64,000 nt of DNA from Dimorphilus gyrociliatus. Taxonomy: Eukaryota; Animalia; Annelida. The position numbers were made by a program, and so were the translations under genes. The notes under the pieces are model-generated. The model was not told the origin of the DNA. It worked only from the letters and a program-made list of their open reading frames with translations, and searched no databases. Below are positions 19,576 to 64,000 of the stretch, one piece after another. Every line of letters begins with the position of its first letter. Within the stretch, counting starts at the first letter, position 1. The DNA is taken from the NCBI GenBank assembly GCA_904063045.1, contig CAJFCJ010000016.1, forward strand, positions 972,556 through 1,036,555, read 5' to 3'.

Positions 19576-20772
19576 TTCGTTCTGAAGAGAGAAGAGTCTA
19601 ATAGCAGATGACAAACGTTTCTTGAATGCGAAAAAGAGCTCTCTCTTCCATTTTATTTAATGTTTTTCATGATGTTTAAATAAATCATTTTATTTGACGT
19701 TTAGTAAACAGTAAACGCCAATATGTGTTAATAGTTCAGGTCGATTTAATCTGATATTTCCCTCTTATGGGTCTAAATCTAGACTAAAAAATCGTTCTTC
19801 TTCCATCTCCGTTTCATAATAAATTAACGAAAAGTTGGTGTAGAAATGTTATTTTTCCTCTGTTTTCGTTCTTTTAACATTATTTATTTGACGTTTATCT
19901 ACTAAAATAACGATTTCTATTAAATAGATTATAAAATAATTAAGGCCTATATCTTTATAGAAATATATATACAGTATATATATATATTCAATATTCGTTA
20001 TTTAAACTAACTATTAACAACTCTGCAATACATTCACCTTACGCAAAAATGACATAAATCTCTTCTACACGGTTCATTCTCTCCCTCTTTAAACTTCTAA
20101 AACTACTTATTTATAATAAGCACAATCTTAACGATATCAATTACAAGAAATAAACCTAAACCATAAAAATGAGCCGACAGGGATTATTACAAAATATTGT
20201 CAACTAAGCAGACAAGACTTAAAGTCTATTTTTAAGGTTGGAAAACAGGCAAATCTATACTTTACCGTAGATTCGTTTGTTCAACTTGATATTCTATTTT
20301 TAGACGAGATAGGAAAGTTAGAGGATGAATATACGAAACGAACGAAATAGTTCCAAGAATTCGTTCTATGTTGAATATAGAGAAATACCTTTAGATATAG
20401 ACTGTCTATAGTCATATGCATATATATAGAATAAAAGATAAAAATAGAAAAAATAATCAGTACTCGATAGAAAGAAAGAAAAAAAAACATTAGTCTGCTA
20501 ATCAATAACTTTTGTACCGCAAATGGTAAATGGTTCATTGGTTAGTTGGTCGGTCGGTCGGTTGGTCGGTTGGCTGATATTGAATAAGAGGCCTAGGTAA
20601 ATTAAACACGCTTTGCAATTTCAAGACAGAAAGCGAGAGAGTAAGAGAGAGAGAGAGAAAAAGAATTATACCTCATGTTATATATTCAAGGGAATTGAAT
20701 ATACTAAGGTAGGTGTAAACATTATACAATTTCAATACATTTATAACGGTATTACCAACTACTTTGCAGTCA

Positions 20773-23700
20773 ATGGAATCTCTGGAATTACTTTCGTTAA
20801 ACTTTTATAAATCTATACTAAAAACCAACGTTGGAAAATATATATCATTTCAAGAGTTTTGTTCAAAGCTATACGATCTAAAGCTAACAACTCGAATCGA
20901 ATTGAACGATTTGCACTCGCAATTCGACAATTACGGAGAATCAGCTTTTAATTACTTAATTCAAATTCTAACCGATTCTACAATAGACAACTTTTGCAAC
21001 AATCTCAAGGAAAACGACAAGAAATCTATTAAAGAGTTTGCCAACAAGTTGAAAACCAGTAAGATATTATGGAAGCTATTAATTGACGATGTAAAATGTC
21101 TAAGGAGAAAGGATTTATGCGAGATCCGCCCACTACTCTTCGAAGAGATTAAACCCATTCGACTATCGGATGTAACCGCAACTATAAAATTAATAACAAC
21201 TAAGGATAAAAGCACACTTGAAAATTGTTGTGAATGGAATGGAAACGGCGTCGATTATAGTAATTTCTACGGAATTTTTGATAAATTCAATAAAATCCTA
21301 ATAGAAGGAGGAGAAGGGATTGGAAAGACTATTCACGTTCGACATCTTATCTATTGTTGGGCGAACGATGTTTGGGAAAAGCATACAGATAAATTAATTA
21401 TTCGTCTATCCTTACGCAATTTAACTAATCAACAAGATATCTTTGACGCAATTATTCAACAAAATTTCCAACAGATTAGCTATATCGACAAAAGACTCGT
21501 ACAGTTATTTTTCCACGAAAACAACTCCAAAGTTCTACTATTCTTAGACGGAATAGACGAGATAAACAACTCGTACGGAATTGATGATTTAACGAACGGC
21601 ACTTCAAATAGAGAATTATCAACAGTGGTTAATTCTAGAAAATGGAAAATTAACGATTTAATAAATAATCCTAATCCGGAATTATCGACAATTGTTTGGT
21701 CGAGAAAGTGGAAATTAGAAGAAATACAAGAATCATTCGATATAGTATTTGAGTTGGAAAGTTTTAATGATAAAGAATTGAAATATTTCTACGAAAAATC
21801 CATTATTGGCTGTTCAGAAAGAATTCAATACTTTCTTCAAGTGCTGAACAATCAAAAATGGTTCATTAAGGATTTTTGCCGAATTCCTTTATACTCTCTA
21901 ATTGTTTATATTGTTTGGCAGTATAATAAATGCGAATTTAAAGAGAATCGCTTCGAATACTATACGGAAATCATGAGGATTATTCAAGAGAGGGACGGTC
22001 TCGATAAGCGAAACACTATGCCAATTATCCATAAACTACACAAGCTGGCGTTCAGTCACCTAAAAACGAATCAATCAACAATCAACATTGCCGACGATCA
22101 TCAACTAAAAGAGATTATAGTCACATTAGGCAACATTCTTCAATTAGACGATCAAAACAATGTTCAATTCTATCATCACTCCTTTCAAGAGTTCTTTACG
22201 GCTAAGTATATTATTGCGCAATATCCGATTAATTTCTCCGGACGTGTTAAAAGCATAAGTAAAACTTGGAAACAATTCGAAAAGAATATGAAAGAATTTC
22301 TTATGGCAGTGAAAAGAATTCAATTTTTCAACACAATGAACTTTATTAAACAAGGAAATATTGATATATTTGAAAAAATCATTCTTAAATTTGATATTAT
22401 TCCAACTCTATACGAATCTAAATATCTCGTAAAGGAACACCTTGGAAAGAGACGCTACCATAATTACGAATTAAAATTAAACGACACGAATGAAGGACAT
22501 TCAAGTTCAACAATACTAGCCGTTCTCCTACATAGAATTGGATCTAATCTAACCAATATGACGATTGCAATTAACTCGGTTTCTTTCAAATCTATTCTTC
22601 ATATTTTAAGTAAACATTCACCGAATTTGAAGGATTTATCGTTGATTTGTGGCGAAAGAATAGAGTTGTTCTATCAGAGTGAATCGTTTCTAGAAGTTTT
22701 TCTAACTTTAATCTCTTCAACGAACGTCGAAAGAATACAATGGAAAAAGCATATTTTCAACATCTCTTCCCACAGCCGCAATAGAAACGAAACGAATTCG
22801 ACAATACAAAGATTCATTGAAGAGTTTGAAATTTCCAACGATCCTAATTGCAAAGACGTCTTCGATATTCAAACGGCAAACGGTTCAGTTTTCTTGAAAA
22901 GTTATCAAGATAAAAGCAAACACTTCCTACGGATTGTTGATAGAAATTACATGAATTTTTTAAGTAAATTAAACGATACGGAGACTTTAATACTCGAAAA
23001 TAAAATAATACCATACTATATTTATTTGGATTTTCACGATATGTTGGAAGAGAGAAAGAAGAGGGAACAGATCAAATCTATTATCATCCTCAATACAATT
23101 GTACGAAATAGAGATAATTCAACGTTTATCAACTACAATAGTCATTACAAAAGTAACGCTTCCAACATACCAAATGGAGTTATAGAAAGTAAACATGTAG
23201 GAAAGTTTGTCCTATTGAATTCCAACGTAAATTGCTCGAATAGAGAGGGAAAGTACGAATTTCTTGCCAGAACTAAGAGAAAGGCATTAAAATTGATCAA
23301 CTCTTCCTCAATTAATGACAATACCGGCAGCAGCAATAGTTTTGAAACGAATCTCGTAATTGTCGAAGAGAGTATGAAATACAGAAACGACTGTAGATTG
23401 AATCTATGCAAAAAGGACGACCTATTTAAAAGACGTCGAATGGTTGGAAATTGTTTTCATTCAATTAAACCGTTCAAGTATTTTATGAAAAAGAACATAA
23501 AAGAATTACAAGTGATAAACATTAATTTTCAATATATGCCTACAACGAAACTTGATAGGGATGTATGGAAATTAAATTCAACTATAGAAGTATTGGATTT
23601 TAGCTATAGTACCTTTACAAATCAGACTTTTTATTCAATATTCTCAGCCTTAAAGGAACACTGTCGTCGTATAATTCATATTAATTTATCAAATTGCGAA

Positions 23701-26226
23701 CTAACCGAAACACAAGGTAAAATACTAAGCGATTTATTAACGAAACTATCAACAATCAAGGTTATTAATTTGGCTTCGAACAAACTACTCAAAGGCAGCT
23801 TTGATAAAATTATTCCATCTCTGAAACTCTCCGATCAAAAGATTCAAGAAATTAACTTTTCAGACTGCAATCTAACAACTGATCAGGGTGAATTGATAAG
23901 CGCTATCCTCTTGAATTGCTTTTCGCTTAAATCGCTTAATCTCAGCTCGAATAGGAAATTGAAAGAAAGCCTTTATTCAATCATTCGCTCGATAAAAAGG
24001 TCTAATCCTAGAATAGAATACTTAAACTTTTCCAACTGCAATTTACAAGGAAATCACGGAATTTTACTAGCCGAAGTGTTTGAATATAGTAAATCAATTG
24101 AAAAATTCTATCTGGCTACCAATCCGGATATGAAGAGAGGACAAGGCGCTCTCCTTTCGTCGTTAAAGGGATGTAGTTCGTTAAAAGTTCTACATCTGTC
24201 CACTTGCAACCTGAACGCAGAACACGGACTACTGCTTGCCGAACTATTCTCAATATGCCCCCTATTGGAGGATATTTGCTTGAAGAATAACGACGAGATT
24301 GAGAAGGGTTTTGACGATATTTTAACGTCTCTTCAACAGTTACGTTGTTTGAAAAAGTTCAATTTCACTAATTGCCGATTGAATGACAAACACGGCAAAC
24401 TATTGGGTGATTTAGTCAAACGATTTAATTTTAAACTTGAAAAAGTCAATCTTAACGGAAATATTAGCATTACAACTGGCTTTGATAATATATTATCTAG
24501 TTTGAAAGAGTCGACAACCCTTCGGGAGATTAATCTATCGAATTGCGGATTGAACGTTTGTCAAGGAGAAATATTGTCAAAAATCGTATCGAATTGTTCG
24601 CATTTATCGAAATTATACTTGAAAAACAACCAGAATATTGAACAGAACTTCTATTCGATTATTAAATCGTTAAGATCGTCAAATCACCTTAAAGAAATAG
24701 ATTTCTCCGGATGCGATCTGAACGATAAATGCGGATTATTGCTTGCGGAAATCTTTCGAAATTGTTGCACTTTGGAAAAAGTCTATTTGAAATGTAATCA
24801 TAGATTAGAGAGTAGTTTCGATAAAATCATTTCGTCGCTTAAAAGATCTTCAAAGAGTCTTCGAGTAATCGATCTATCCGGTTGTGGATTGAATGAAAGG
24901 AGCGGATCGATAATTGCCGAATTGTTTAAAAGTTGTTGTTCGTTAGAAGGGATTCATTTAAAGTATAATCAAGATATGAAAGCAAGCCTCAATAAAATTA
25001 TTCAATCGTTTCAAACAACTTTAATACTGAACGAAATTGATCTATCCGGATGTAATCTGAATGAAAAACAGGGCGAATCATTGGCTCAAGTACTGCAAAT
25101 TAATAGGTCGTTGGAAAAACTCTATCTAAGGTATTGCAAGAATATTGGATTAGGTTTCTATCCGATTTTCTGTTCTCTCGATACGATTACCACCCTAAAA
25201 GAATTGGAATTATCCGGATGCGGATTGAATGCAGCTCACGGAAAGCTGCTCGCCAAAGTATTACGCCGTTGCAGTTGCTTGGAAAGAATTTGCTTGAAAT
25301 TTAATAAAGGTCTTTGTTCAAGTTTCGATACGATTATTGAAAGTTTACAACGGCTGAAATATTTAAAGGACGTCGACTTTTCCGGTTGCGAATTGAATGA
25401 ATATCACGGTAAATTACTGGTAGGATTACTTAGAAATTGCCCTCTCCTACGTAGAATTGGATTGGATTATAATAAAACCATTAAAGGAGAAATAGATAAT
25501 ATTCTTGTTGCGATGAAGAGATCGTGGATTATCGATCAAATCGATCTATCGGGCTGCGGATTAAAAGCGAAACAGGGAGAAATTCTCGAAGAACTATTCA
25601 TAAATTCTTATTCATTTCAAAGAATCTACCTTAAATACAACGGAGGCGTACAAAGCGGTTTCGATAGAATTATTTCATCGTTAAAATTGTTACCCTATCT
25701 TAAAGACCTTGACCTTTCGTTTTGCGAATTGAATAAGAAACAGGGAAAACTGTTGGCTGAATCCTTTCAAAAGTGTCTACTATTGGAGAGAATCTATTTA
25801 AAGAATAATTTTGGTATGGAAGAAAGTATTACTAGTATTATTCGCAGTTTAGAAAAGTTGCGCAATTTAAAAGAACTAGATCTATCCAGGTGTAAATTGA
25901 ATGAGGAGCAAGGAGTTATCTTGGGTAAAGTTTTTAAAGATTGTCCGCTTCTGGAGAAGGTTCTTTTAAATTCAAATATGGACATTAACGCAGGTTTCAA
26001 CTCTCTAATTCCAGCCTTAGAGCTGCTGCACAATCTAAGAGAAATAGATTTAGGCTGTTGCCGATTGACAATAGAACAGGGAATGTTGCTCGCAAAAGTC
26101 TTTAAAGATTTCGCTTCTCTCGAAAGAATCAATTTGAAACGAAACTTTGTTGACTTGAGAACGAAAATTGACGTTGTAATATCGCTCTATTACAATTTGA
26201 GTGATTCTGTACAGTTGGAACTATAA
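20773..26226 (+). CDS. NLR-type NACHT-LRR protein 1 (intronless coding region, probable N-terminal death-fold)
   Basis: Walker A GGEGIGKT, Walker B LLFLDGIDE, winged-helix motif FYHHSFQEFFTAKYI, then many 28-aa RI-like LRRs (e.g. LKEIDFSGCDL / LEKVYLKCN). First ATG is at 20773; the ORF track starts at TTG 20764 inside a probable intron 20709-20769. Confidence 0.9.
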   Translation: MESLELLSLNFYKSILKTNVGKYISFQEFCSKLYDLKLTTRIELNDLHSQFDNYGESAFNYLIQILTDSTIDNFCNNLKENDKKSIKEFANKLKTSKILWKLLIDDVKCLRRKDLCEIRPLLFEEIKPIRLSDVTATIKLITTKDKSTLENCCEWNGNGVDYSNFYGIFDKFNKILIEGGEGIGKTIHVRHLIYCWANDVWEKHTDKLIIRLSLRNLTNQQDIFDAIIQQNFQQISYIDKRLVQLFFHENNSKVLLFLDGIDEINNSYGIDDLTNGTSNRELSTVVNSRKWKINDLINNPNPELSTIVWSRKWKLEEIQESFDIVFELESFNDKELKYFYEKSIIGCSERIQYFLQVLNNQKWFIKDFCRIPLYSLIVYIVWQYNKCEFKENRFEYYTEIMRIIQERDGLDKRNTMPIIHKLHKLAFSHLKTNQSTINIADDHQLKEIIVTLGNILQLDDQNNVQFYHHSFQEFFTAKYIIAQYPINFSGRVKSISKTWKQFEKNMKEFLMAVKRIQFFNTMNFIKQGNIDIFEKIILKFDIIPTLYESKYLVKEHLGKRRYHNYELKLNDTNEGHSSSTILAVLLHRIGSNLTNMTIAINSVSFKSILHILSKHSPNLKDLSLICGERIELFYQSESFLEVFLTLISSTNVERIQWKKHIFNISSHSRNRNETNSTIQRFIEEFEISNDPNCKDVFDIQTANGSVFLKSYQDKSKHFLRIVDRNYMNFLSKLNDTETLILENKIIPYYIYLDFHDMLEERKKREQIKSIIILNTIVRNRDNSTFINYNSHYKSNASNIPNGVIESKHVGKFVLLNSNVNCSNREGKYEFLARTKRKALKLINSSSINDNTGSSNSFETNLVIVEESMKYRNDCRLNLCKKDDLFKRRRMVGNCFHSIKPFKYFMKKNIKELQVININFQYMPTTKLDRDVWKLNSTIEVLDFSYSTFTNQTFYSIFSALKEHCRRIIHINLSNCELTETQGKILSDLLTKLSTIKVINLASNKLLKGSFDKIIPSLKLSDQKIQEINFSDCNLTTDQGELISAILLNCFSLKSLNLSSNRKLKESLYSIIRSIKRSNPRIEYLNFSNCNLQGNHGILLAEVFEYSKSIEKFYLATNPDMKRGQGALLSSLKGCSSLKVLHLSTCNLNAEHGLLLAELFSICPLLEDICLKNNDEIEKGFDDILTSLQQLRCLKKFNFTNCRLNDKHGKLLGDLVKRFNFKLEKVNLNGNISITTGFDNILSSLKESTTLREINLSNCGLNVCQGEILSKIVSNCSHLSKLYLKNNQNIEQNFYSIIKSLRSSNHLKEIDFSGCDLNDKCGLLLAEIFRNCCTLEKVYLKCNHRLESSFDKIISSLKRSSKSLRVIDLSGCGLNERSGSIIAELFKSCCSLEGIHLKYNQDMKASLNKIIQSFQTTLILNEIDLSGCNLNEKQGESLAQVLQINRSLEKLYLRYCKNIGLGFYPIFCSLDTITTLKELELSGCGLNAAHGKLLAKVLRRCSCLERICLKFNKGLCSSFDTIIESLQRLKYLKDVDFSGCELNEYHGKLLVGLLRNCPLLRRIGLDYNKTIKGEIDNILVAMKRSWIIDQIDLSGCGLKAKQGEILEELFINSYSFQRIYLKYNGGVQSGFDRIISSLKLLPYLKDLDLSFCELNKKQGKLLAESFQKCLLLERIYLKNNFGMEESITSIIRSLEKLRNLKELDLSRCKLNEEQGVILGKVFKDCPLLEKVLLNSNMDINAGFNSLIPALELLHNLREIDLGCCRLTIEQGMLLAKVFKDFASLERINLKRNFVDLRTKIDVVISLYYNLSDSVQLEL

Positions 26227-28771: not shown

Positions 28772-31700
28772 TTCTTATTGTTTAAGCGAATGATTTGTAA
28801 ATAAATTTCAATCGATACATCCTGAAAACCTATCACAGAAACTTGGCATAATAACATATTCAAAGAATATTAGCAAGCCATCATCATCTCTTCAATAAAT
28901 TTCAGCTTCTTTCATTGTCTACATCGGTAAATCGCTTATTAATATTGAATACTAAGTGATTGCCATCATCATAATCATATTAAATCTATCTCCAACATAC
29001 TAGCAGCGAAATAAATATATAAATATTTAATTATAATTAACGTATTCCTATAGAAATTCACAGGTAGACTGAAACGTTCATACTCTCCAGTGAAACCATA
29101 CTGATGATATAGGCCATTTTTATACAAATGCCATATGTATTTGACAGTGTATATACGCTATAAATGTTAGCAAGTTGAAACGAAAGTACAAGGAGTGGTA
29201 AACGTACTCGTGGTAATTGTTTTTTCTTTTTTTTAATAATCATTCATCCAGTCTATTTTAGCTGGACAGAAAGACTCGGAGAGAGGTTTGCTGTTATTCA
29301 ATATATTATATGCCAAATATGACGTCAACCCTGTATTGAAAACTTTCAGTGTTTATCGATAATGAATGGGACCTTTTACCGTATTCCCATTTCAAATTTA
29401 ATAAATACATCAGCAAATATCGCTTGTAAGCATTTTGGCTTTCAAAGAAAGTAATGTATATTTACTGGGCCGGTATACTACTAATGAAACCTCGGCGTTC
29501 TATCTTGTTTGTACCGACCTACAAAACTGACTATTTAAACGACTGCAAAATATGAAAAGTTGCTATTTATTTTTGTATAAATTCAAAGGAAAATTATGTT
29601 TTACAATGACACAAAGTTATTTTGTAAGATGTTCAATTCACCAGGGTTAAGGGTATCCAGTCGGGACGAAGCACAAATTTATTGATCATATTATGATATC
29701 GGACGCGACGTAGGACAGTCTATCATCTTCAATTCAAAATATACAGCAGATACCGCAAGGAATAGATAGTAGATGTATTAAAATCTATTCTCGACGGAAG
29801 ATGTGAGTGTTTTTTTTATTTTGAAATAAAACTTGTCTCTCCAATCCTGATGACGCCAACTTGCGATAGATTTTCCCATGTAAAATTGAAAATGCATGTA
29901 TTAGTAGTAAATTTGTTTTGATGGTCATCCAGACTGCTCCGACGGATTAGACGAAAACAGCTGTAGTCAATTAGAAATAGTTCAAACAGTATAAATATCG
30001 TTTCTGTTTGCGAAATTGATTGTACTACGGTTTACTTCTGGAAAACAATGTTCATTTGTATTGTATTTAATCGCGATGAATGCAAACTTTTGAATTTATT
30101 CAGCGACTTTAATTTCTGCGATAAGAAGAAAGTTCATCCGTGTGGAGAGAATGAAAAAGTCTCTCATTGCTATGACAAAAGTATATCCTTGTCATCTGTT
30201 AATTCTTTAATTGAAGGACTGCTTTCCTAATGAATAATAATTAGGTCAATATGGAAGATGAACTTTGTATAATAGTTATCGAGATGATTTGCTATTTTAT
30301 TCCAAACTATACGATAACAAGATTATCCAAAACAACAATAAACTATTCGTTATAATAGCTAAGCGTAATGACAACCAACATTCTCTATATTAAAATATAT
30401 CTTTACTTTTCAATACTGAAGTTCCTTCCAGAATCAAACAGTTCAGACTAGCAGCTCCATAATTTGATCTATATTATTTCATCTTTAGTCGGTTATCAAG
30501 TATTTTCAGATATATTGAAAATGATAATACAGTATGCTGATGAACACAAAAAATGTATAGTATAACAATAGAAAAGTTTCTTTACATAGAAAATGTTTAC
30601 AGAGGAAAAGGTGGAAACCTAACCAATTTTCTTCTTTCACAGCCCGTATGATTTCTACTCAACTGATGTATTTACTTTGAAAATTTCCCAACATTCAACT
30701 CATGCAATATAACAACAATCTTTCGAGAAAGTTCACAATTGCAAATTGTAAACTTTAAGAGAATGGAATTTTGCACCGTCCTGCAAACAACGCTAAGCCA
30801 ACCTGTTCTTTGGGATCAATTACAAGCAGTAGAGGACACGTTAGAACAAAAGTTAGAACAAAAATAAAATATACTAGCTCTCGGCTTATTATTAGGGAAA
30901 TGAGTAATAAAAGGAATAGAGGTAGCCAATCCCGAATGCATTCTACGCAGTATTTTCCCTCAAACAACAATAACTCTCTCTGCTTTGTTGTTTTTAATTT
31001 AGATGTGGAATAAATAACCTGGCAGTCGTTATCACTCGTTCGAGCAATCGTTGACCCAAACTCAAGAATAGATATTATTCTTTTTGTTTAGTGCGCATGC
31101 TCTAAAATGAGGAAAAACAATTAATCAATCAATCACCAATAACTACATTCCCAATAGTCTTTTTCGAATGACGTCAAAATGTTTAGTATGCGTTTGCATA
31201 ATTGATAGTAAATGTCAGATATTTTTATACCAAGAGTATATAGAAGGAACGAAATTATAATGTATTAACTCTCTTAACAATGCAAGTCAATCATTAATGT
31301 AAGACTCTCCTATTATTATTACTGTAAAAAATAATGACCTTTTATTGCTAACTCAATTGAAGGGAAATTGAAATTCATTCACATATCACTACTTATATTA
31401 GTACCAAGTGTCTCGATTCGCTTTCTTTTTATACAGAATGCTGCTAGCTCTATCTAGAGTTCGTTCATAACTCGAATATAAAGAACTTTGCAAAGTTTTA
31501 CGAATAGGAAAGACAATTAGCTTTTAACAGGGTTAGGTGACAAAGTTTTATCCACGATTTATATCTATGTAGTTAAAAATTACTTGTTTGAGCTAACTCT
31601 GACGCATTGATAACCAATCTAATCGGCTTTATTATCAAGAATTCTTGCAATGAAATGTTGCTGAAAGTTAAACTATCTTATTTAATCTAGTTCCTCTTTA

Positions 31701-54025: not shown

Positions 54026-55061
54026 GAACAACCAGCTGATGGTTATAAAACTGAACTGACTACTGTTAAATTCTAAGGGTTTATATACTTTTCCAATAGT
54101 TCACAGTTCACAGATAAAAATATTCACACAAACAAATGTAACAATTTGGATAAAGGGAAAGTTCAAATATACTTCCATGTTTGTTACTTTTTCTTTATCT
54201 TGGAGAACTTTTGCTCCCTATTTTAGTAGGTCAAAAAGTTGCCTAAGATGTAACAATTATTAATAGAAGTTGGATTGATTCCAAAACACAAAAATAGGAA
54301 AAGGTCAACTTGATGCCGTTTTAATATACAACAAATTATTAATAATAATTGTTTGTGTAAGATAATATGTTTCTGTGTAAAGGACTGGTAGCATAAAAGT
54401 ATTAAACTTAATTAACTAATATAGTATTGTGCATACAATACTGTTGAAAAGTGACAATAATCTAAAAACTTCAAATATAAATAGAATAGTGGAAGATATA
54501 ATTAATATTCATTAAATATGATGTGTATAATAATTAGGGTTAACATCTAAGTTATAAAATACTTTTACAACTTAGTTTAAATAGTGTATGTTGTAGTTTT
54601 AGGCGTGTAGAGTACTCTATAATACTCTTTCAATATTGCTTTCCATCGATGAAAGAAATGTAACAATTTGGGTGTATTGTGTGAATTTGTGAGCCTGGTT
54701 ATAAGCTTATGTGTTTAGTACCTATGAACTGCCTAAATGTGTACATATAAGTTTCATAAAAAAATAGAGTTCAAGCATGTAAAATATAACCAAAGCTGTA
54801 CAACAATAAGGCTTTTTCTTTTGTTATGATTGTGTTCATGTTTACTCTTTATGAAAATATTTCATTTTTGTTGAATAATAACTGGACATTGAACATTCAT
54901 ATTGTACAACTTTGGTTATCTTTTACATGCTTGAACTCTATTATTTTATGCAACTTATACATGTACATCTTAAAACCTACACAAGAAAATGCTATAACAT
55001 TGGCCAAACATAAGTCTGATTAGTCAGCTTGAAGGCTCATCTTTAATTACCAATAAAGGTT

Positions 55062-55195
55062 TGGCCAAGTTATAATTTAATTAACTTGCCTAGGGTGTGG
55101 CCAAGTTATAATTTAATTAACTTGCCTAGGGTGTGGCCAAGTTATAATTTAATTAACTTGCCTAGGGTGTGGCCAAGTTATAATTCAATTAACCT
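55062..55195. repeat. 36-bp palindromic minisatellite, about 3.7 copies
   Basis: TGGCCAAGTTATAATTTAATTAACTTGCCTAGGGTG starts at 55062, 55098, 55134 and 55170 (last copy partial); internal inverted repeat CAAGTTA..TAACTTG. Confidence 0.92.
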
Positions 55196-56501
55196 TCCTA
55201 AATGTTGAACCTTGTAACATCCTCTTACTAAAGATAAATATGAATTACACATTTTTTTCAGTTTCATTTTCATGCAATAAGTTTTCCTCTATATTACAAG
55301 TAATGTAACTTCATAATGATTACAACTGTCTTTAACCCTGTTATTGAGAGTACAACTCAGAGCAGCTTTTACAATGGGATCATCATTGATCACATCTGAT
55401 AAACTAATGAAACAATATCTGTCACTCAAACTTTTGCATGAAGAAGGCTTATCATCTAACATTTCTGTAATATTAAGCAAAGTTAAATAAATATTTGGTT
55501 TTTACATAGTAAATATCATCTTTACAGATATGATGACAAAGTGAATTTCTTCAGTCCTAAACTTTTCTGCACATTTTTTGCAAAACACTCTTTGAGATTC
55601 TAAATGAAAAATGAAAAACATGAATAATTTAATAAAAACATATAAACAGACAGACCTTTGAGCATTCTTCATGTACATAATGTTGGCACTCACTGCATTT
55701 CATCTTACTCTGTCTACCATAAAATCATTTATTACAGTTAATACAAACAGGTGCCCTTAGTAAATTTCTAATTCATTTCTCTTTTAATAGCATTACATAA
55801 TTCAGAGAAAACTGGTAAAAACATTACAATACATATATCTTTCTTCAAAAATATTAATATATTTTTTTTATAAATGAAGTAAATAGCAAAAAGAAATATT
55901 TTTGATTCAAAGTATCAATAATTATACCTGGTATATCCTTAGCCATGCATAGGATGTTTTTTCCCAGGGACGTCTTTTTCAAACCGCCATAGCTCCTAAA
56001 TGGCTGGGCAGATTTGGTTCAAATTTTGTACAGAGATTCGTTTGTATTGGGACTAACTCTGTACCAAATTTTATAGAGATTGGAGCAGTTTGAAAATTTC
56101 GATAATTTTATTGGTCGACTCACAAGTGGAGGACACTTATATTCGACCTGCAGGTACATCAAGCCTGTCAATAATCAGTCTGGTGGCAATTGTACTGTGG
56201 CTTTTCAACTCACTTGAAAAAGGGTCAATAGACCTGAAGTATTGTGAGTGTTTTTATTTTGGTGAATTGTTACATCTGTTAAATACAGGTTCTCTTCACC
56301 CTTGTTGAGAATATGTAAGTGGTTTTGTTGGAGATACAATTACAGCTTAGGCTGGGGAATTGCTACTCAGGATAGCAACTCCTCATTAGCTACACCAAAA
56401 CTTAGCCAAATCTTGGTTACAAGTGTGTGTACACTTTTGTTAGCTATGTGGGCTCTGACTTATACATAATATCAAAGTTTGTTGATCACTACCTGGTCTA
56501 A

Positions 56502-57461: not shown

Positions 57462-60400
57462 ATGGCAAAAGTAAGAATATTTTTTTTTAATTTATTAAAT
57501 TATATTTTTTGGATTTTTTTAGGCAATTATATAGTTGAGATTTCAATAGCAATTTAGTAAAAATGCTGGAATATATGTTAAGATAATATTTGAAAGTATC
57601 TGTTGTCAGCCATTGCAACTAGACTTGGCAAATTACCAAATTTAATGTTACCTGTTTTATTTGCTTACAAATCTTAGTGAAAGGTTGTTTATCATTCTAT
57701 TCTACATTTTTCATCACCAAACACCTATTTAATTCTAAGTATATTTTTAATAATAATATTTCTCAATGATAATTATTGTCTAGTAAACTACAAACTCAAC
57801 CCTTCACTATGACAACAATATATATATTCTTATTTCATCTTTTAAAGATACTAGATTATAGTATGGTAAAAAAAGATCCTTTTGAGAAAATGTTGATCTA
57901 ATTTGAGAACTAATAGTAATATAGTGAGAATATTATAATTAAAAATAAATGTATGTTTATAAAAATGTATTAAAAATGTAAAAAGCTAAGAATGTTATAC
58001 AACGTTTTAAAGTTACTCAAATACAAACAAAATATGGTGAGACACTAAGAATTTTTTTGAATAGATTATTTGCAATCTTCTGTGAGAGGACAGCAGATTT
58101 AATCATTCATTTCTCTTTAAATAGCATCACATAGTTCAGAGCAAGTGGGTAAAATATTGCAGTACATTTTTCATTAAATTTATTACTAATTATGCCCAGT
58201 ACATCTTTATCCATGCCTTGGACATTTTTTCCCATCTATGGGTGTACTTTGTTCTATTGTAATTGTAGGAAGTCCTAGCTCGTTGCTATAAAATTTGTCC
58301 TCTCCAATCATTTACCAATGTGCCAAAGTACTAGTCCAAATAGAACCATTCAAGTTCGTCCACAAGTAGTCTAAATAAATGTAATTCCAGTAAAAATTAA
58401 CCAACAAACACCAGTATTTCATTCAAAGAATATGTATTTGAGTAAATGAGTTTCTAGTTCTAAACAAGCAAGTTTAGATCCCATCTATGGGATATCATTC
58501 CCAGGCATGTTTTTTCCCTAGGATGGTTTTTCTCAATCATAACCATTACATTAGTGATCATTAAAACATTTCTGTGTAGGCTTCAAATCTTTTTTTTCCC
58601 AATAAAATCTGTCAATAAATTTATATTTTACAGCACATTAGAAATAACTTACTTAACTATCATTATGAAAATATATTAGAATGTCTAAATGGTGATGAAA
58701 AATTTCAAACATTTCTACTACAGGAAGATGTGATTAAAGACAATTGTTTATCTGAGCAATTAAATTTTGAAAAGCTTTTTAAGGAACATATTCAATATGT
58801 GCCAACATCTAAATTCCTTTTAATTTTACTTAAAATGAACACAGTAAAATGTCAAAGACTTTCGGAATTGATTAACAATACTTGGACTATTTTAATGAGA
58901 GAGAGAAAGAATATTTTATTAAAGGATTTGGAAACAATTCCAAAGTTTCCATTTTTAAAAGAAAATCCTTCTCAGATTAATTTCAGTAAAATTTTCACAC
59001 CCATCCAATTGGTATCATCAAAAAGTAATCTGGTTGTTGATGAAAATTTTGATGATATTAAATCCTTTCAAAAGATTTTAATTGATGAGGAAAATAAAAG
59101 AATTTTGATTAGAGGAGATGCTGGTATGGGTAAAACTTATCATGCAATGAAAATTTTACATTCATGGGTTCATGATGACACATTTTTGGACAATTGTCTT
59201 CTTTTGTATATCAAACTTGGAGCTGTTCAAAGAACTGCATCTAAAGAATCTTTGGTTGATGAACTGTTTACAAATAATTTTAAAAGAGACTCCTGCATTA
59301 CCAAAGAACTCTTTCAGTACTTTTTTGAGCAGACAGAATGCAAAGAAAAGATGATTCTTCTTTTGGATGGGGCTGATGAACTGAAATATGAAGATTCAAT
59401 ATTTAATGATATTGTAAAAAAGTGTAATTTTACAATTTATCCAGTAATTGTTTGGGCAAGAAATTGGAAAATTAGACATGTTAGTGATACCTATGATTTT
59501 GTATTTGACATCAATGGATTCAATGAAAGACAATTGAAAATTTATTTTGAAAAATTTTTTAATGAAGACAATTTACCTGATTTAAAACTACCATTTTACC
59601 ATAATAAAAGCCATAAGAAATTAACCACTAATTGTTTCCACCATGATGGAAAAGTTATAAAGAAATCTGATATTCTTTTTCAAATGTTAAAAACAGAAAA
59701 CAAAGAAGTTTTTAACATTTGTAATAGTCCTTTAATAGCCTGTTTAGTAGCTGGTATTTGGGAAGAAAGAGATACAAATATTATAGGTACTAGATATTCT
59801 ATTTTTGATCAATCCATACAGATTCTATTAACTAAGGCTGGCATTGATTCTAAAAGTAATGATTATACGAAAATTTTAGAATATTGTTCAAAACTGGCTT
59901 TTGAAAATTTACTTTACAATAAAGAAATATCAATAAATGAAATTGTAAAAAAGTCAGATTATATTGGTGGATTATTGATTCCAGTTAAGAAAAAATCATC
60001 TATGACGCAATTTAAAGATTTTACATTTATTCATATTTTCTTCCAAGAATATCTAACTGCAAGATATATCATAAATTTATACCAAGATAGCAAGAAAAAT
60101 GAATCAATGATTCAATCACTAAAAACATATTTTGACAAGTTGGAAAATCTATTTTTATTGAAAAATGTTTTCAGTTTTCTTCAAGAAATAAATTATAAAG
60201 TATTTTCTCAAATTATTGAAGAGAATGAAAATATTCTTATGGTATTGGAAACTGATCAAAGAATTATTGATATAATAAATAGAAGGCATTCAAATTTAAT
60301 TGAACTTGAGTCAATATCATTACCAACAACTATTATTAATATTATATTTAATTCCTATAAAAGAAATATCAAAGAAATCAATTTCAAATTTGTTAAGATA

Positions 60401-63400
60401 AATCTACCAAATTTTATTGAGATCTGTACCAGCCAATTGGAAAATATATTAGAAATTTTTAAAATCAATGGAGGTATTGAAGAATTATTAGAAATTGAAA
60501 TAGTAAAAAAGTTAATGACAAAAATGCAAAAATTAAGAGTTTTAAGTATAACTAATGTTTTCTTCAATGGATGTTTAGAATTGTCATCCTTTATACAATC
60601 AACTACAATAGAAGATTTAACATTAGAAAATTGTAATTTACAAAAATGTTCACCTAGATTTTTGAATATGAAATTCAAATGTCTTTATTATTTCAATATT
60701 TCTGAAAATCAATTTGAAGGTAAGGAGTAATTTTTCAAATATGACTATTTTAAAACAATCAATTTTTTAGATAATCAGCCCTTGGATTATATTCTGATAA
60801 ATAACAGAGATATTATCTCATTAAATATTTCAAAATGTTTTAATTCAGGAAAACAATCAGAAAATCTAATAAATCTTCTTCAACAATATCCAAATTTATC
60901 ATTTCTTAATTTTTCAGACAATATCATTCCAAATAATATCTGTAATACAATATTTACAAATCAAAATAACCAAATCAGAGGTTTACAAATTAACAATTGT
61001 AACACAGAACTTGATTCAAAAGACATTATTACATTTTTGGAATTCAATAAAGAAATAGAAATTTTGGAGTTAAAAGGAAATGTTTTAAAAGAAAATGATG
61101 AAAACTCTTTTCTAACAGCTTTATTATCATTGCAAATTGTAAAACATCTGAAATTGCCATTAATAGATCATAAAGAAATGATTTGGAAAAAAGAAAAATT
61201 GTCTCAAAATTGTAAAAGTTTAATAAATCTGAAATTGCTGGATTTGGGAGAAAATTCTTTAGAACATGAATGTATAACTGACTTTTTTCAACAAGTTTTA
61301 CAAAGTTCAAAATATTTATATACTCTTTTTTTAAGAAAGTCTAAAATTTCTTCCAAAGTTATAAACATGATGTCAAATTCTTATAGACAGGTAACTTCAA
61401 CAACAGAAAATCTTCAAAAGCATAAACTTTATATGATATTTAATTCATGTGAATTTGACTTAAAATTGGATGATATTACTAAATTTTTCAATGGTATGTT
61501 CTACTTCATTGACTTAGATATATCTCATACAAAGGCACAATTGGTTATTGATAATCTCTCCAGTCTAAAATCTCTTGAGCAAATTGAAAATTTAATTTTA
61601 GCAAAGTGTCAATTAACTTCAAACGATCTAGCCAAAATTGGAAAGTGTATTCATATGTTCACATCTATAAAAAAGTTAGATATATCATACAATCCAATTG
61701 ATTCATTTGCTCTTTTAAATTTTTTCAAAACGTTCACTATAAATAATCACAAATCAATTAGACAACTCTACATACACAAGTGTAATTTTCATTTGAAACA
61801 TATTTTACAAATTTGTCAAGCTATTCAAAGTTTATACAACTTGGATATTTTAAATTCATTATCCAATCCTCAAACTGTCAATAAATTAAATACTTCAGAA
61901 TTGGACAAAATACTTAATTCAAATCTATTCAATTTGTCTTTTATTCAAAAACTTTTAAATGATTTCTCAGATATATTAGATACAAGATTATTAAAAATTT
62001 CAAACAGTTACAACTTTCCAATAAATAACATACTAAATATAATTAAAGAAAATCAATCAATAGTTATTGACACATTGGAAATAACATCACAATTAAATAT
62101 AACTCAAATATCACATCTAAAAGAAGCTATTGAAAAAAACATTTCTTTTCAAACATTACAAGCTTTGCTCATTGATGATAAAAACATATCAGAGCATGTT
62201 TTAGAATATAATGACAACAATGTTAAAGACAAATGTTCAGATTTAGTAACATTTCTTTTAGAACATATTAAAACAAATTGCACAAACTTGACCTTACTTA
62301 GAGTAAGCAATTGTGAAATTCAACAGGTTTGGTCATACTATTGGAGATGCAATTGGTAAACAAACTCTACTGACTGAACTATTTTTAAGTGACAATCCAA
62401 TTGGAACAGAAGTTGGAAAAAGTATTTTTGAAAATATTAAAAGAAATTGCACAAAGTTGACAGCACTTGTTTAAGCAATTGTGGATTTCAATCTACAATT
62501 GGTGATGTTGTTGGAGATGCAATTGGTAAACAAACTCTACTGATAAAATTATTTTTAAATGACAATCCAATTGGAACTGAAGTTGGAAAAAGTATTTTTG
62601 AAAATATTAAAAGAAATTGTACAAAGTTGACAGTCATTGATTTCCAAAATTGTGGATTTAAATCAGGAATTGGTGATGTTGTTGGAAATGCAATTGGTAA
62701 ACAAACTCTACTAACTAGGCTATCTTTAAGGGACAATCCAATTGGAACTGAAGTTGGAAAAAGTATTTTTGAAAATATTAAAACAAATTGTACAAAGTTG
62801 ACAGATATTTATTTCCAAAATTGTGGATTTAAATCAGGAATTGGTGATGTTGTTGGAGATGCAATTGGTAAACAAAGTCAACTGATAAAATTATTTTTAA
62901 ATGACAATCCAATTGGAACTGAAGTTGGAAAAAGTATTTTTGAAAATATTAAAACAAATTGTACAAAGTTGACAGTCATTGATTTCCACAATTGTGGATT
63001 TAAATCAGGAATTGGTGATGTTGTTGGAAATGCAATTGGTAAACAAACTCTACTAACTGGGCTATCTTTAATGGACAATCCAATTGGAACTGAAGTTGGA
63101 AAAAGTATTTTTGAAAATATTAAAACAAATTGTACAAAGTTGACAGTCATTTATTTCAAAAATTGTGGATTTAAATCAGGAATTGGTGATGTTGTTGGAG
63201 ATGCAATTGGTAAACAAACTCTACTAACTGAGCTATCTTTAAGGGACAATCCAATTGGAACTGAAGTTGGAAAAAGTATTTTTGAAAATATTAAAACAAA
63301 TTGTACAAAGTTGACAGTCATTGATTTCCAAAATTGTGGATTTAAATCAGGAATTGGTGATGTTGTTGGAGATGCAATTGGTAAACAAACTCTACTAACT

Positions 63401-64000
63401 GAGCTATCTTTAAGGGACAATCCAATTGGAACAGAAGTTGGAAAAAGTATTTTTGAAAATATTAAAACAAATTGTACAAAGTTGACAGTCATTGATTTCC
63501 AAAATTGTGGATTTAAATCAGGAATTGGTGATGTTGTTGGAGATGCAATTGGTAAACAAACTCTACTAACTGAGCTATCTTTAAGGGACAATCCAATTGG
63601 AACGAAGTTGGAAAAAGTATTTTTGAAAATATTAAAACAAATTGCACTGAAGTTGAAAGCATTAATTTCAATAATTGTGGATTTGAATCAGGAATTGGTG
63701 ATGTTGTTGGAGATGCAATTGGTAAACAAACTCTACTGACTGAACTATTTTTAAGTGACAATCCAATTGGAACAGAAGTTGGAAAAAGTATTTTGAAAAT
63801 ATTAAAACAAATTGTACAAAGTTGACAGTCATTTATTTCCAAAATTGTGGATTTAAATCAGGAATTGGTGATGTTGTTGGAGATGCAATTGGTAAACAAA
63901 CTCTACTAACTGAACTATTTTTAAGTGACAATCCAATTGGAACTGAAGTTGGAAAAAGTATTTTTGAAAATATTAAAAGAAATTGCACAAAGTTGACAGC
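57462..64000 (+). CDS. NLR-type NACHT-LRR protein 2 (runs off the window; frameshifts in LRR array)
   Basis: Possible micro-exon ATG GCA AAA at 57462-57470; large exon from 58634; Walker A GDAGMGKT, Walker B LLLDGADE, FIHIFFQEYLTARYI; 51-nt intron 60720-60770 joins ORFs 58730 and 60782 in frame; RI-like LRRs. The first exon is tentative. Confidence 0.85.
58243..58478. mobile_element. dispersed repeat copy 2, inserted with a 13-bp target-site duplication
   Basis: TCCCATCTATGGG at 58230-58242 and 58479-58491 brackets the copy. Confidence 0.8.
62351..64000 (+). repeat. 171-bp coding tandem array (57-aa A/B LRR pair), at least 9.6 units
   Basis: The AATTGGTAAACAAA anchor recurs at 62351, 62521, 62692, 62863, 63034, 63205, 63376, 63547, 63717 and 63887. 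Confidence 0.97.

Follow-up and report, generated by a model that had tools for sequence, protein, structure and literature searches.

The window, a 64,000-nucleotide stretch of the Dimorphilus gyrociliatus genome, carries near its downstream end a predicted NACHT-LRR gene on the forward strand. The gene is predicted to start at position 58730, and a tandem array at 62341–64000 forms its C-terminal part. Exon 1 comprises an open frame at 58730–60719 (ORF 58730–60730; predicted 5′ end) that encodes an N-terminal region of about 120 residues, followed by a NACHT NTPase and the start of the irregular LRRs; among the annotated proteins of the species, P0001 matches this ORF at 98% identity. The NACHT domain, with the Walker A motif GMGKT, is found at 59099–59566 (ORF residues 124–279; Pfam PF05729, E=5.5e-16; 59.3 bits, with the cutoff at 26.7). 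No Pfam domain was recognised in the N-terminal region even at E≤5, and a structure search of a paralogue's N-terminus against the atlas found only the regions that precede NACHT in animal NLRs, all with TM<0.5. Downstream, a 51-nt intron with GT..AG boundaries in phase 1 is predicted from the sequence at 60720–60770; splicing there would connect the 58730 frame with the 60782 frame without a stop. Exon 2 opens with a non-repetitive region of irregular LRRs at 60771–62340 (ORF 60782–62359), marked by LxxLxLxxN/C motifs in the translation, and continues into the array, which is matched by Pfam LRR_1, LRR_4 and LRR_6 on the same strand as NACHT. Continuity from NACHT to LRRs hinges on breaks in the frame, some of which are repaired by short-read contigs (see below). 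As read, one gene joins a NACHT NTPase with a Walker A motif to a C-terminal LRR domain, the architecture of an NLR. The original prediction of an animal NLR is borne out by the Pfam match and by identity to the annotated protein, which make it the NACHT-LRR of an annelid.

Tandem Repeats Finder reports a single array at 62341–63999, with a period of 171, 9.7 copies, 93% matches and 0% indels. The 57-residue units are anchored at 62349, 62519, 62690, 62861, 63032, 63203, 63374, 63545, 63715 and 63885, and each is a pair of one A-type and one B-type ribonuclease-inhibitor (RI)-like LRR of 28 and 29 residues. The contig, C16, physically ends at window position 64000, inside the array, so the assembly cuts the array short and its last unit runs off the contig. 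A second copy of the gene lies on contig C105. Adjacent units share 82–100% protein identity over 342 residues in the window copy and 81–93% over 696 residues in the C105 copy. Repeats of high internal conservation (HIC) have been defined by at least 70–85% mutual identity over at least 100 residues (Dyrka 2014; 2026 GBE paper), and on these unit identities, used here rather than T-REKS, the array falls within that definition.

An AlphaFold2 model of 62519–63544 (pLDDT 80, pTM 0.77) predicts an RI/NLRP-type horseshoe, in keeping with the ribonuclease-inhibitor fold first proposed from the repeat pattern. By Foldseek, the model matches NLRP LRR domains and ribonuclease inhibitor at a TM of about 0.8 (NLRP3, NLRP2, NLRP14 and RNH1 structures). 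Strands are predicted at unit residues 10–14 and 39–43.

Differences between units are concentrated in these strands. On recount, 14 of 171 nt distinguish the unit at 62521 from that at 62692, exactly as first noted, and exactly 12 of the 14 fall in the two strand motifs (codons 8–14 and 39–41, with eight amino-acid changes); the strand peptides listed at the outset all occur in the translations. We extended the comparison to 31 units, taken from the window locus and the C105 copy and derived from a single laboratory culture. More than half (55%) of the pairwise nucleotide diversity falls within the 12 "x" codons that the two strands contain (permutation p=2e-5), and many codons show five or six amino-acid states. 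The claim that the array is hypervariable only at ligand-facing residues proved too strong, as codons 32, 48, 53 and 57 outside the strands also vary, non-synonymously. Likewise, the near-invariance of the backbone at synonymous sites was overstated: backbone synonymous diversity (pS) is about 0.07–0.09. In the model, the variable sites are every other residue of the predicted β-strands, those turned toward the solvent. The variable x positions map to the predicted binding surface and adjoining loops, the location at which HIC repeats are expected to vary.

The structural L/N/C codons of the strands have an omega of 0.1 and, apart from stops due to indels, no in-frame stop occurs in the 31 units, which indicates purifying selection on the scaffold. 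At x codons, pN is 0.242 against a pS elsewhere of 0.095 (ratio 2.56, bootstrap 95% interval 1.28–6.5, excluding 1). Within the strand segments themselves dN and dS are nearly the same (omega 1.0), so the classic local test does not indicate positive selection. Strand codons show a weak synonymous excess (p=0.015 when all codons are counted, p=0.19 in those whose amino acid is invariant). Old, retained cassettes were considered as its source; given the p of 0.19 in the invariant codons, we keep this as a suggestion only.

The C105 copy is 97% identical to the window copy, and may be an allele or a recent paralogue. In their unique parts dS is just 0.016–0.022; the predicted intron at 60720–60770 shows no difference between copies, and the irregular LRR region at 60771–62340 has a dN/dS of about 1.0. 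The C105 array has at least 21 units, against at least 10 in the window copy, and includes a 12-unit open run of 696 residues, a scaffold gap of 1120 N and a transposon at the array end. The two arrays are not collinear past unit 1 and differ in unit number and order, although both are incompletely assembled, so that number and order may be partly wrong. Across the genome, units of at least 88% identity occur only at these two loci. Unit backbones differ by 3.1–3.4% inside one array but by 4.7% across the two (p<0.0005), codons 48 and 53 carry array-specific variants, and the nearest neighbour of nearly every unit is a unit of its own array. Multi-unit blocks are duplicated at spacings of 3, 4 and 9 units. 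Variants of strands A and B reassort among units: all four gametes occur in 64 of 126 A–B site pairs, and r2 is 0.07 between the strands versus 0.18 within strand A. On this evidence the units evolve in concert within each array. The recombination-driven turnover envisaged in the original prediction is supported by this clustering, the duplicated blocks, the A/B reassortment and the unit order that differs between copies.

Another history would be a young tandem amplification without ongoing homogenisation, in which x positions differ through relaxed constraint and not through diversifying selection. An x-codon omega of 1.0 against local dS is what neutral sites would give, certain neighbouring units are near-identical, and paralogues, too, are most variable at x positions. 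However, an x-codon pN above the synonymous rate elsewhere is not expected of neutral sites. Strand segments differ by 13–16% between units, against a dS of about 0.02 between the gene copies, and the five or six amino-acid states at many codons require multiple hits. Array-specific backbone variants combined with reassorted A and B strands also require recombination. We regard a young amplification as unlikely.

The assembled reading frame of the window copy is interrupted four times, all on the forward strand, and we compared each interruption with Logan short-read contigs from four runs of two studies. The first break, at 62322–62330, is a 2-nt deficit relative to C105, which has TG inserted after 62325; the short-read contigs of runs X2 and X4 have a 2-nt insertion at 62322/62325. 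The second, a 1-nt deletion in unit 1 at 62468–62469, creates an in-frame TAA, and the contigs of all four runs have one additional base there, G or A, which makes a consensus error the likely cause. A 1-nt deletion at 63604, in the unit starting at 63545, forms the third break, on which the reads speak neither way; this unit also bears compensating +1/−1 indels in its B strand. The fourth is a 1-nt deletion in a T5 run at 63791, in the unit starting at 63715 and 210 nt short of the contig end. Short-read contigs thus restore the frame at two of the four window breaks (62322–62330 and 62468). They also show no deletion at the C105 break that matches window position 60380. PacBio-CLR consensus errors, in places that short reads cannot polish, probably account for most if not all of the breaks.

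These breaks raise the question of a decaying pseudogene. The window copy has four and the C105 copy its own; the neighbourhood is rich in transposable elements, one of which abuts the C105 array, the annotated proteins lack the array, and a search for RNA data sets carrying the sequence found none. Nor did we find a C-terminal cap like that of the paralogues: a tblastn search of C105 and the window, in which the tails of P0003 and P0004 served as queries, returned only LRR matches. Decay nevertheless seems quite improbable to us. Frame-restoring bases are present in short-read contigs at two breaks, the C105 deletion is not seen in them, and the breaks are concentrated beside the contig end and the scaffold gap. 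The 12-unit run of C105 stays open, and the low omega of structural codons, with stops by substitution absent from all 31 units, is at odds with loss of function.

An artefact, in which noisy long-read consensus collapsed a more heterogeneous array, would fit the contig break inside the array, the scaffold gap, the indel errors and the making of the assembly, a CLR-era product of pooled worms (PBcR, Quiver, Pilon, HaploMerger2 and SSPACE). We consider it very unlikely, since two independently assembled contigs yield an identical unit type and identical variable positions, and since codon-respecting, strand-restricted substitutions are not expected of consensus errors. Moreover, short-read contigs of the four runs match the array at 93–99% identity, and array word depth, which is not a copy number, is about 8–30 times the depth of the unique part, a range comparable in magnitude to the count of 31 assembled units.

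Four paralogous arrays (C163, C141, C95 and C169) have an identical 171-bp period, yet a nucleotide identity of 65–77% and a protein identity of 30–75%, making the window gene the homogenised extreme of its family. In these paralogues the x positions are again the most variable; this is a qualitative result, as the HMM alignment had 59 columns rather than 57 and the entropy register is consequently unreliable beyond mid-unit. Outside D. gyrociliatus, the closest proteins are NLRC3-like and come from corals (29–33% identity); their lag-57 identity is about 5%, compared with 81–100% in the Dimorphilus array.

The same paralogues bear on somatic diversification, either by copy choice as in VLRs or by conversion templated on donor cassettes. 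The VLRs of lamprey and hagfish are assembled somatically from flanking cassettes; they are not NLRs and have short LRRV modules. Like them, the array shows diverse LRR residues on the predicted concave face of a conserved scaffold, and the one feature in keeping with such a process is that variants in strand A are cassette-like and linked. Donor cassettes such as those of VLRs were, however, not found: C16 and C105 are the sole loci with units of at least 88% identity, and the 36–42-nt strand segments, searched against the four paralogous arrays, have best matches with at least 10 mismatches. With no close donor match, templated import is unsupported. Nothing speaks for the somatic variants initially thought possible, and we consider such a process extremely improbable.

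Vertebrate LRR units of 171–174 bp are separate exons; in contrast to vertebrate NLRs, the Dimorphilus units are contiguous within one exon. The gene resembles vertebrate and cnidarian NLRC3/NLRP receptors in combining NACHT with alternating 28/29-residue LRRs, as found in the LRRs of ribonuclease inhibitor, but the LRR arrays of those receptors are internally diverged, unlike the near-identical units here. In zebrafish NLR-B30.2 proteins, groups 2b and 4 have extensively duplicated LRRs that are not particularly variable, and recognition is assigned to the B30.2 domain (PMC4852459); in Dimorphilus it is the LRR strands that vary, and a B30.2 domain was not seen. Closer parallels exist in fungi, where HIC-repeat NLRs are well described and their C-terminal repeats are 80–100% mutually identical (PMC4986451, PMC13449251). 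Like the HNWD genes het-e, het-d and het-r and the ANK/TPR NLRs of Podospora anserina (PMC4986451, PMC13449251), the Dimorphilus gene is an NLR with near-identical C-terminal repeats, hypervariability at a few predicted binding-surface positions, signs of repeat gain, loss and shuffling, and transposable elements associated with its loci. It differs in having RI-like LRRs, where the fungal repeats are WD40, ANK, TPR or HEAT and never LRRs, in its animal host, and in the lack of a recognisable N-terminal death or effector domain; RIP, moreover, is not applicable. A 2026 survey that included LRRs concludes that HIC-repeat NLRs occur in animals also (PMC13449251). With the class established in fungi (PMC4986451) and reported in animals, the array is a further case of a known kind and not the undescribed system first suggested.

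On balance we favour, as the probable explanation, that the array is the HIC end of a NACHT-LRR (NLRC3-like) gene, homogenised by recombination while diversity is kept at the binding face. Through gene conversion and through unequal recombination of misaligned units, the scaffold would stay homogeneous while unit number and order change. Amino-acid diversity at solvent-exposed positions of the concave sheet and in adjoining loops would be kept or favoured by selection, and each germline rearrangement could present a different binding surface while the scaffold stays as it was. The product may act inside the cell as a receptor for ligands that are non-self or altered self, and its variants would arise in the germline, as alleles or paralogues, and not in somatic cells. 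We also entertain, with considerable doubt, a stronger form in which the gene is an animal HIC counterpart turning over at a population-relevant rate, its strand cassettes serving as a reshuffled library so that receptor surfaces differ between individuals. Short-tract conversion and unequal crossing-over would then reshuffle cassettes carrying linked synonymous differences. If so, each worm would bear surfaces of its own for pathogen recognition or allorecognition; taken to its extreme, this idea would include a somatic component.

The annotated D. gyrociliatus proteome contains neither copy of the array, so HIC surveys based on proteomes miss such loci. D. gyrociliatus has a genome of 78 Mb and is kept in culture, and is thus suited to measuring repeat turnover directly in individuals. 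In the large NLR repertoires of invertebrates, recognition diversity is usually credited to gene duplication. If the favoured explanation holds, the path to receptor diversity that fungi take through concerted evolution would also operate on the LRRs of an animal NLR.

At the downstream end of the window, an open frame with a NACHT NTPase (58730–60730; Pfam E=5.5e-16) and a second one with irregular LRRs (60782–62359) lie on the forward strand, joined in phase by a 51-nt GT..AG intron (60720–60770) recognised by reading the sequence. The second frame continues into a 171-bp tandem array (62341–63999, forward strand; 9.7 copies, 93% matches and no indels by TRF). Given this succession of NACHT frame, in-phase intron and LRR frame running into the array, the array would be the C-terminal sensor part of a single NACHT-LRR gene. 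The best database protein match (98% identity) is from Dimorphilus gyrociliatus itself, a miniature annelid, and the closest proteins beyond this species are coral NLRC3-like (29–33% identity). The array is absent from the annotated proteins, the sole annotated piece being a 521-residue NACHT fragment from a second gene copy, on contig C105. Some 32 kb upstream of the array gene sits an intact, intronless NACHT-LRR gene of 1820 residues (20764–26226) with ordinary, diverged RI-type LRRs; the NLR cluster in the window thus mixes members of low and high internal conservation. Just upstream of the NACHT frame, short-read word depth at 58201–58600 is 200–300x that of flanking gene sequence, marking a very high-copy repeat fragment.

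Each 57-residue unit comprises an A-type (LxxLxLxxNxI) and a B-type (LxxIxFxNCGF) repeat. The 14 differences originally counted between the units at 62521 and 62692 are exact; 12 fall in codons 8–14 and 39–41, with 8 amino-acid changes as the result. Across 31 aligned units (10 from contig C16, where the window spans 972556–1036555, and 21 from the C105 copy), 55% of pairwise nucleotide diversity falls in the 12 variable (x) codons of the two strands (p=2e-5 by permutation of codon labels), with 5–6 amino-acid states at each of codons 10, 12, 14, 39 and 43, and omega is 0.1 at the structural L/N/C codons inside the strands. The concentration of differences is real and statistically strong. The original description of hypervariability only at ligand-facing residues was somewhat too strong, because residues 32, 48, 53 and 57 also vary recurrently outside the strands, all non-synonymously; of these, 48 and 53 belong to the loop leading from strand to helix, adjoining the concave face. 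The unit at 63545 has TEVES in its B strand (63645–63665) where C105 units have LKLKS or QKLKS. Two indels separated by 12 nt, one of +1 and one of −1, account for this; close to the end of the contig, they are either a compensated frameshift or a pair of consensus errors.

An AlphaFold2 model of six intact units (62519–63544; pLDDT 80, pTM 0.77) places strands at unit residues 10–14 and 39–43, with helices between. By Foldseek, it resembles ribonuclease inhibitors and the LRR domains of NLRP2, NLRP3 and NLRP14 (TM ~0.8, E down to 1e-13). In LRR strands, alternate x residues face solvent on the concave sheet; by this textbook geometry and the DSSP string, residues 10, 12, 14, 39, 41 and 43 are predicted to be solvent-facing there.

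Measured locally, the x codons have dN 0.29 and dS 0.29 (omega 1.0), since synonymous differences are also elevated in strand codons (pS 0.21 versus 0.07 outside). This synonymous excess (p=0.015 over all codons; p=0.19 over amino-acid-invariant codons alone) gives no more than a hint of linked "cassette" haplotypes. A young amplification under relaxed constraint is an unlikely, though not negligible, alternative: non-synonymous diversity at x codons is 2.56x the synonymous diversity elsewhere in the unit (bootstrap 95% interval 1.28–6.5), a ratio that neutral relaxation alone should not produce.

The second copy, on the 46.8-kb C105, is 97% identical to the window gene across 6.3 kb of unique sequence (dS 0.016–0.022). 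Between the copies, dN/dS is 0.42 in the NACHT part, against ~1.0 in the non-repetitive LRR part (window 60773–62320; 27.5 non-synonymous versus 6.5 synonymous differences). The C105 array has 5.6 units, 1120 N and then 15.8 units; although the flanks are little diverged, the arrays are collinear in unit 1 only. Backbone distance is 3.1–3.4% within arrays versus 4.7% between them (p<0.0005), and nearly every unit has its nearest neighbour in its own array (1–5 differences versus 8–13). Array-specific variants have spread across most units at codon 48 (AAA in 7/9 C16 units; GAA in 14/16 units of the C105 post-gap block) and at the first base of codon 53 (G in 9/9 C16 units; C in 13/15 C105 post-gap units). 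Near-identical units reappear 3, 4 and 9 units apart, as would be expected from multi-unit unequal exchanges, and A- and B-strand variants reassort (four gametes at 64/126 site pairs; r2 0.07 for A–B pairs versus 0.18 within strand A). Paralogues elsewhere in the genome share the 171-bp period at 65–77% nucleotide identity. Their adjacent units are 30–75% identical in protein, compared with 81–100% here, which puts the array gene at the extreme, homogenised end of a family where unit duplication recurs. Recombination-driven turnover of the array, one part of the original proposal, is supported by the within-array clustering, recurring blocks, A/B reassortment and non-collinear copies. Somatic diversification is scarcely credible.

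The assembly holding C16 (77.9 Mb, 349 contigs) was built from PacBio RS II reads of pooled females with PBcR, Quiver, Pilon, HaploMerger2 and SSPACE-LongRead (PMC7854359). Position 64000 is the physical end of C16, so the assembler broke within the array; the run of N in C105 is a scaffold gap, as the SSPACE-LongRead step implies, and is not in phase with the 171-bp period. An assembly artefact is very improbable; word depth over the array is ~8–30x the depth over unique sequence, which agrees in order of magnitude with the 31 assembled units, although such depth is not a copy number. A pseudogene is a further reading, since the window copy has four frame breaks and C105 has breaks next to the gap and at the equivalent of window 60380. 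We consider it doubtful, because Logan contigs (four runs, two studies) restore the frame at two of the four window breaks: one extra base at 62468/62469 in all four runs, and two extra bases at 62322/62325 in two runs. The breaks at 63604 and 63791 fall within the last 400 nt of C16. The C105 deletion at the 60380 equivalent occurred in no Logan contig checked, and other differences in these contigs mostly match C105 letters. The window breaks are probably mostly consensus errors, with frame-restoring read contigs for two of four only.

The C105 array breaks off mid-unit (…NCGFG, then stop) precisely at the start of a multi-copy element (L034 6338–6620, the stretch from C105:43132 onward), whose first 280 nt match sites on contigs C5, C14 and C3 at 98–99% identity. 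The arrangement has the look of a transposon inserted into the array; no C-terminal cap like that of the paralogues P0003 and P0004 follows. One and the same 36-bp tandem repeat, in 2–4 copies, neighbours several NLR loci of the 171-bp family (window 55058–55200; L034 9548–9618; C163:12820–12900; C95:97629–97699) and probably belongs to a transposable element accompanying them. Also on C105, a ~1.7-kb element (29794–31500; L035 3000–4700) has at least 18 genome copies at ~100% identity, which suggests a recently active transposon.

Fungal NLRs can carry highly internally conserved WD40, ANK or TPR repeats, though no LRRs; these repeats evolve in concert, are polymorphic in number and are hypervariable at a few positions of the binding surface (PMC4986451). 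The array gene resembles them in its near-identical repeats, its variation concentrated at predicted binding-face positions and its signs of concerted evolution, but differs in its LRR repeats and animal host. Zebrafish NLR-B30.2 groups 2b and 4 likewise repeat one LRR type, more than 20 times, but these repeats are reported as not particularly variable (PMC4852459). A 2026 study described repeat exchange between paralogues and transposable-element association in high-internal-conservation (HIC) NLRs, and concluded from a SMART survey covering LRRs that such NLRs are present in animals, plants and bacteria too (PMC13449251). Our literature search found no paper on D. gyrociliatus NLRs or an annelid HIC LRR array. 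We favour, with moderate confidence, an HIC-type array shaped by concerted evolution as the best explanation. HIC NLRs being already known, it is not the new kind of system first supposed; what is notable is an HIC array of LRR type in an animal.
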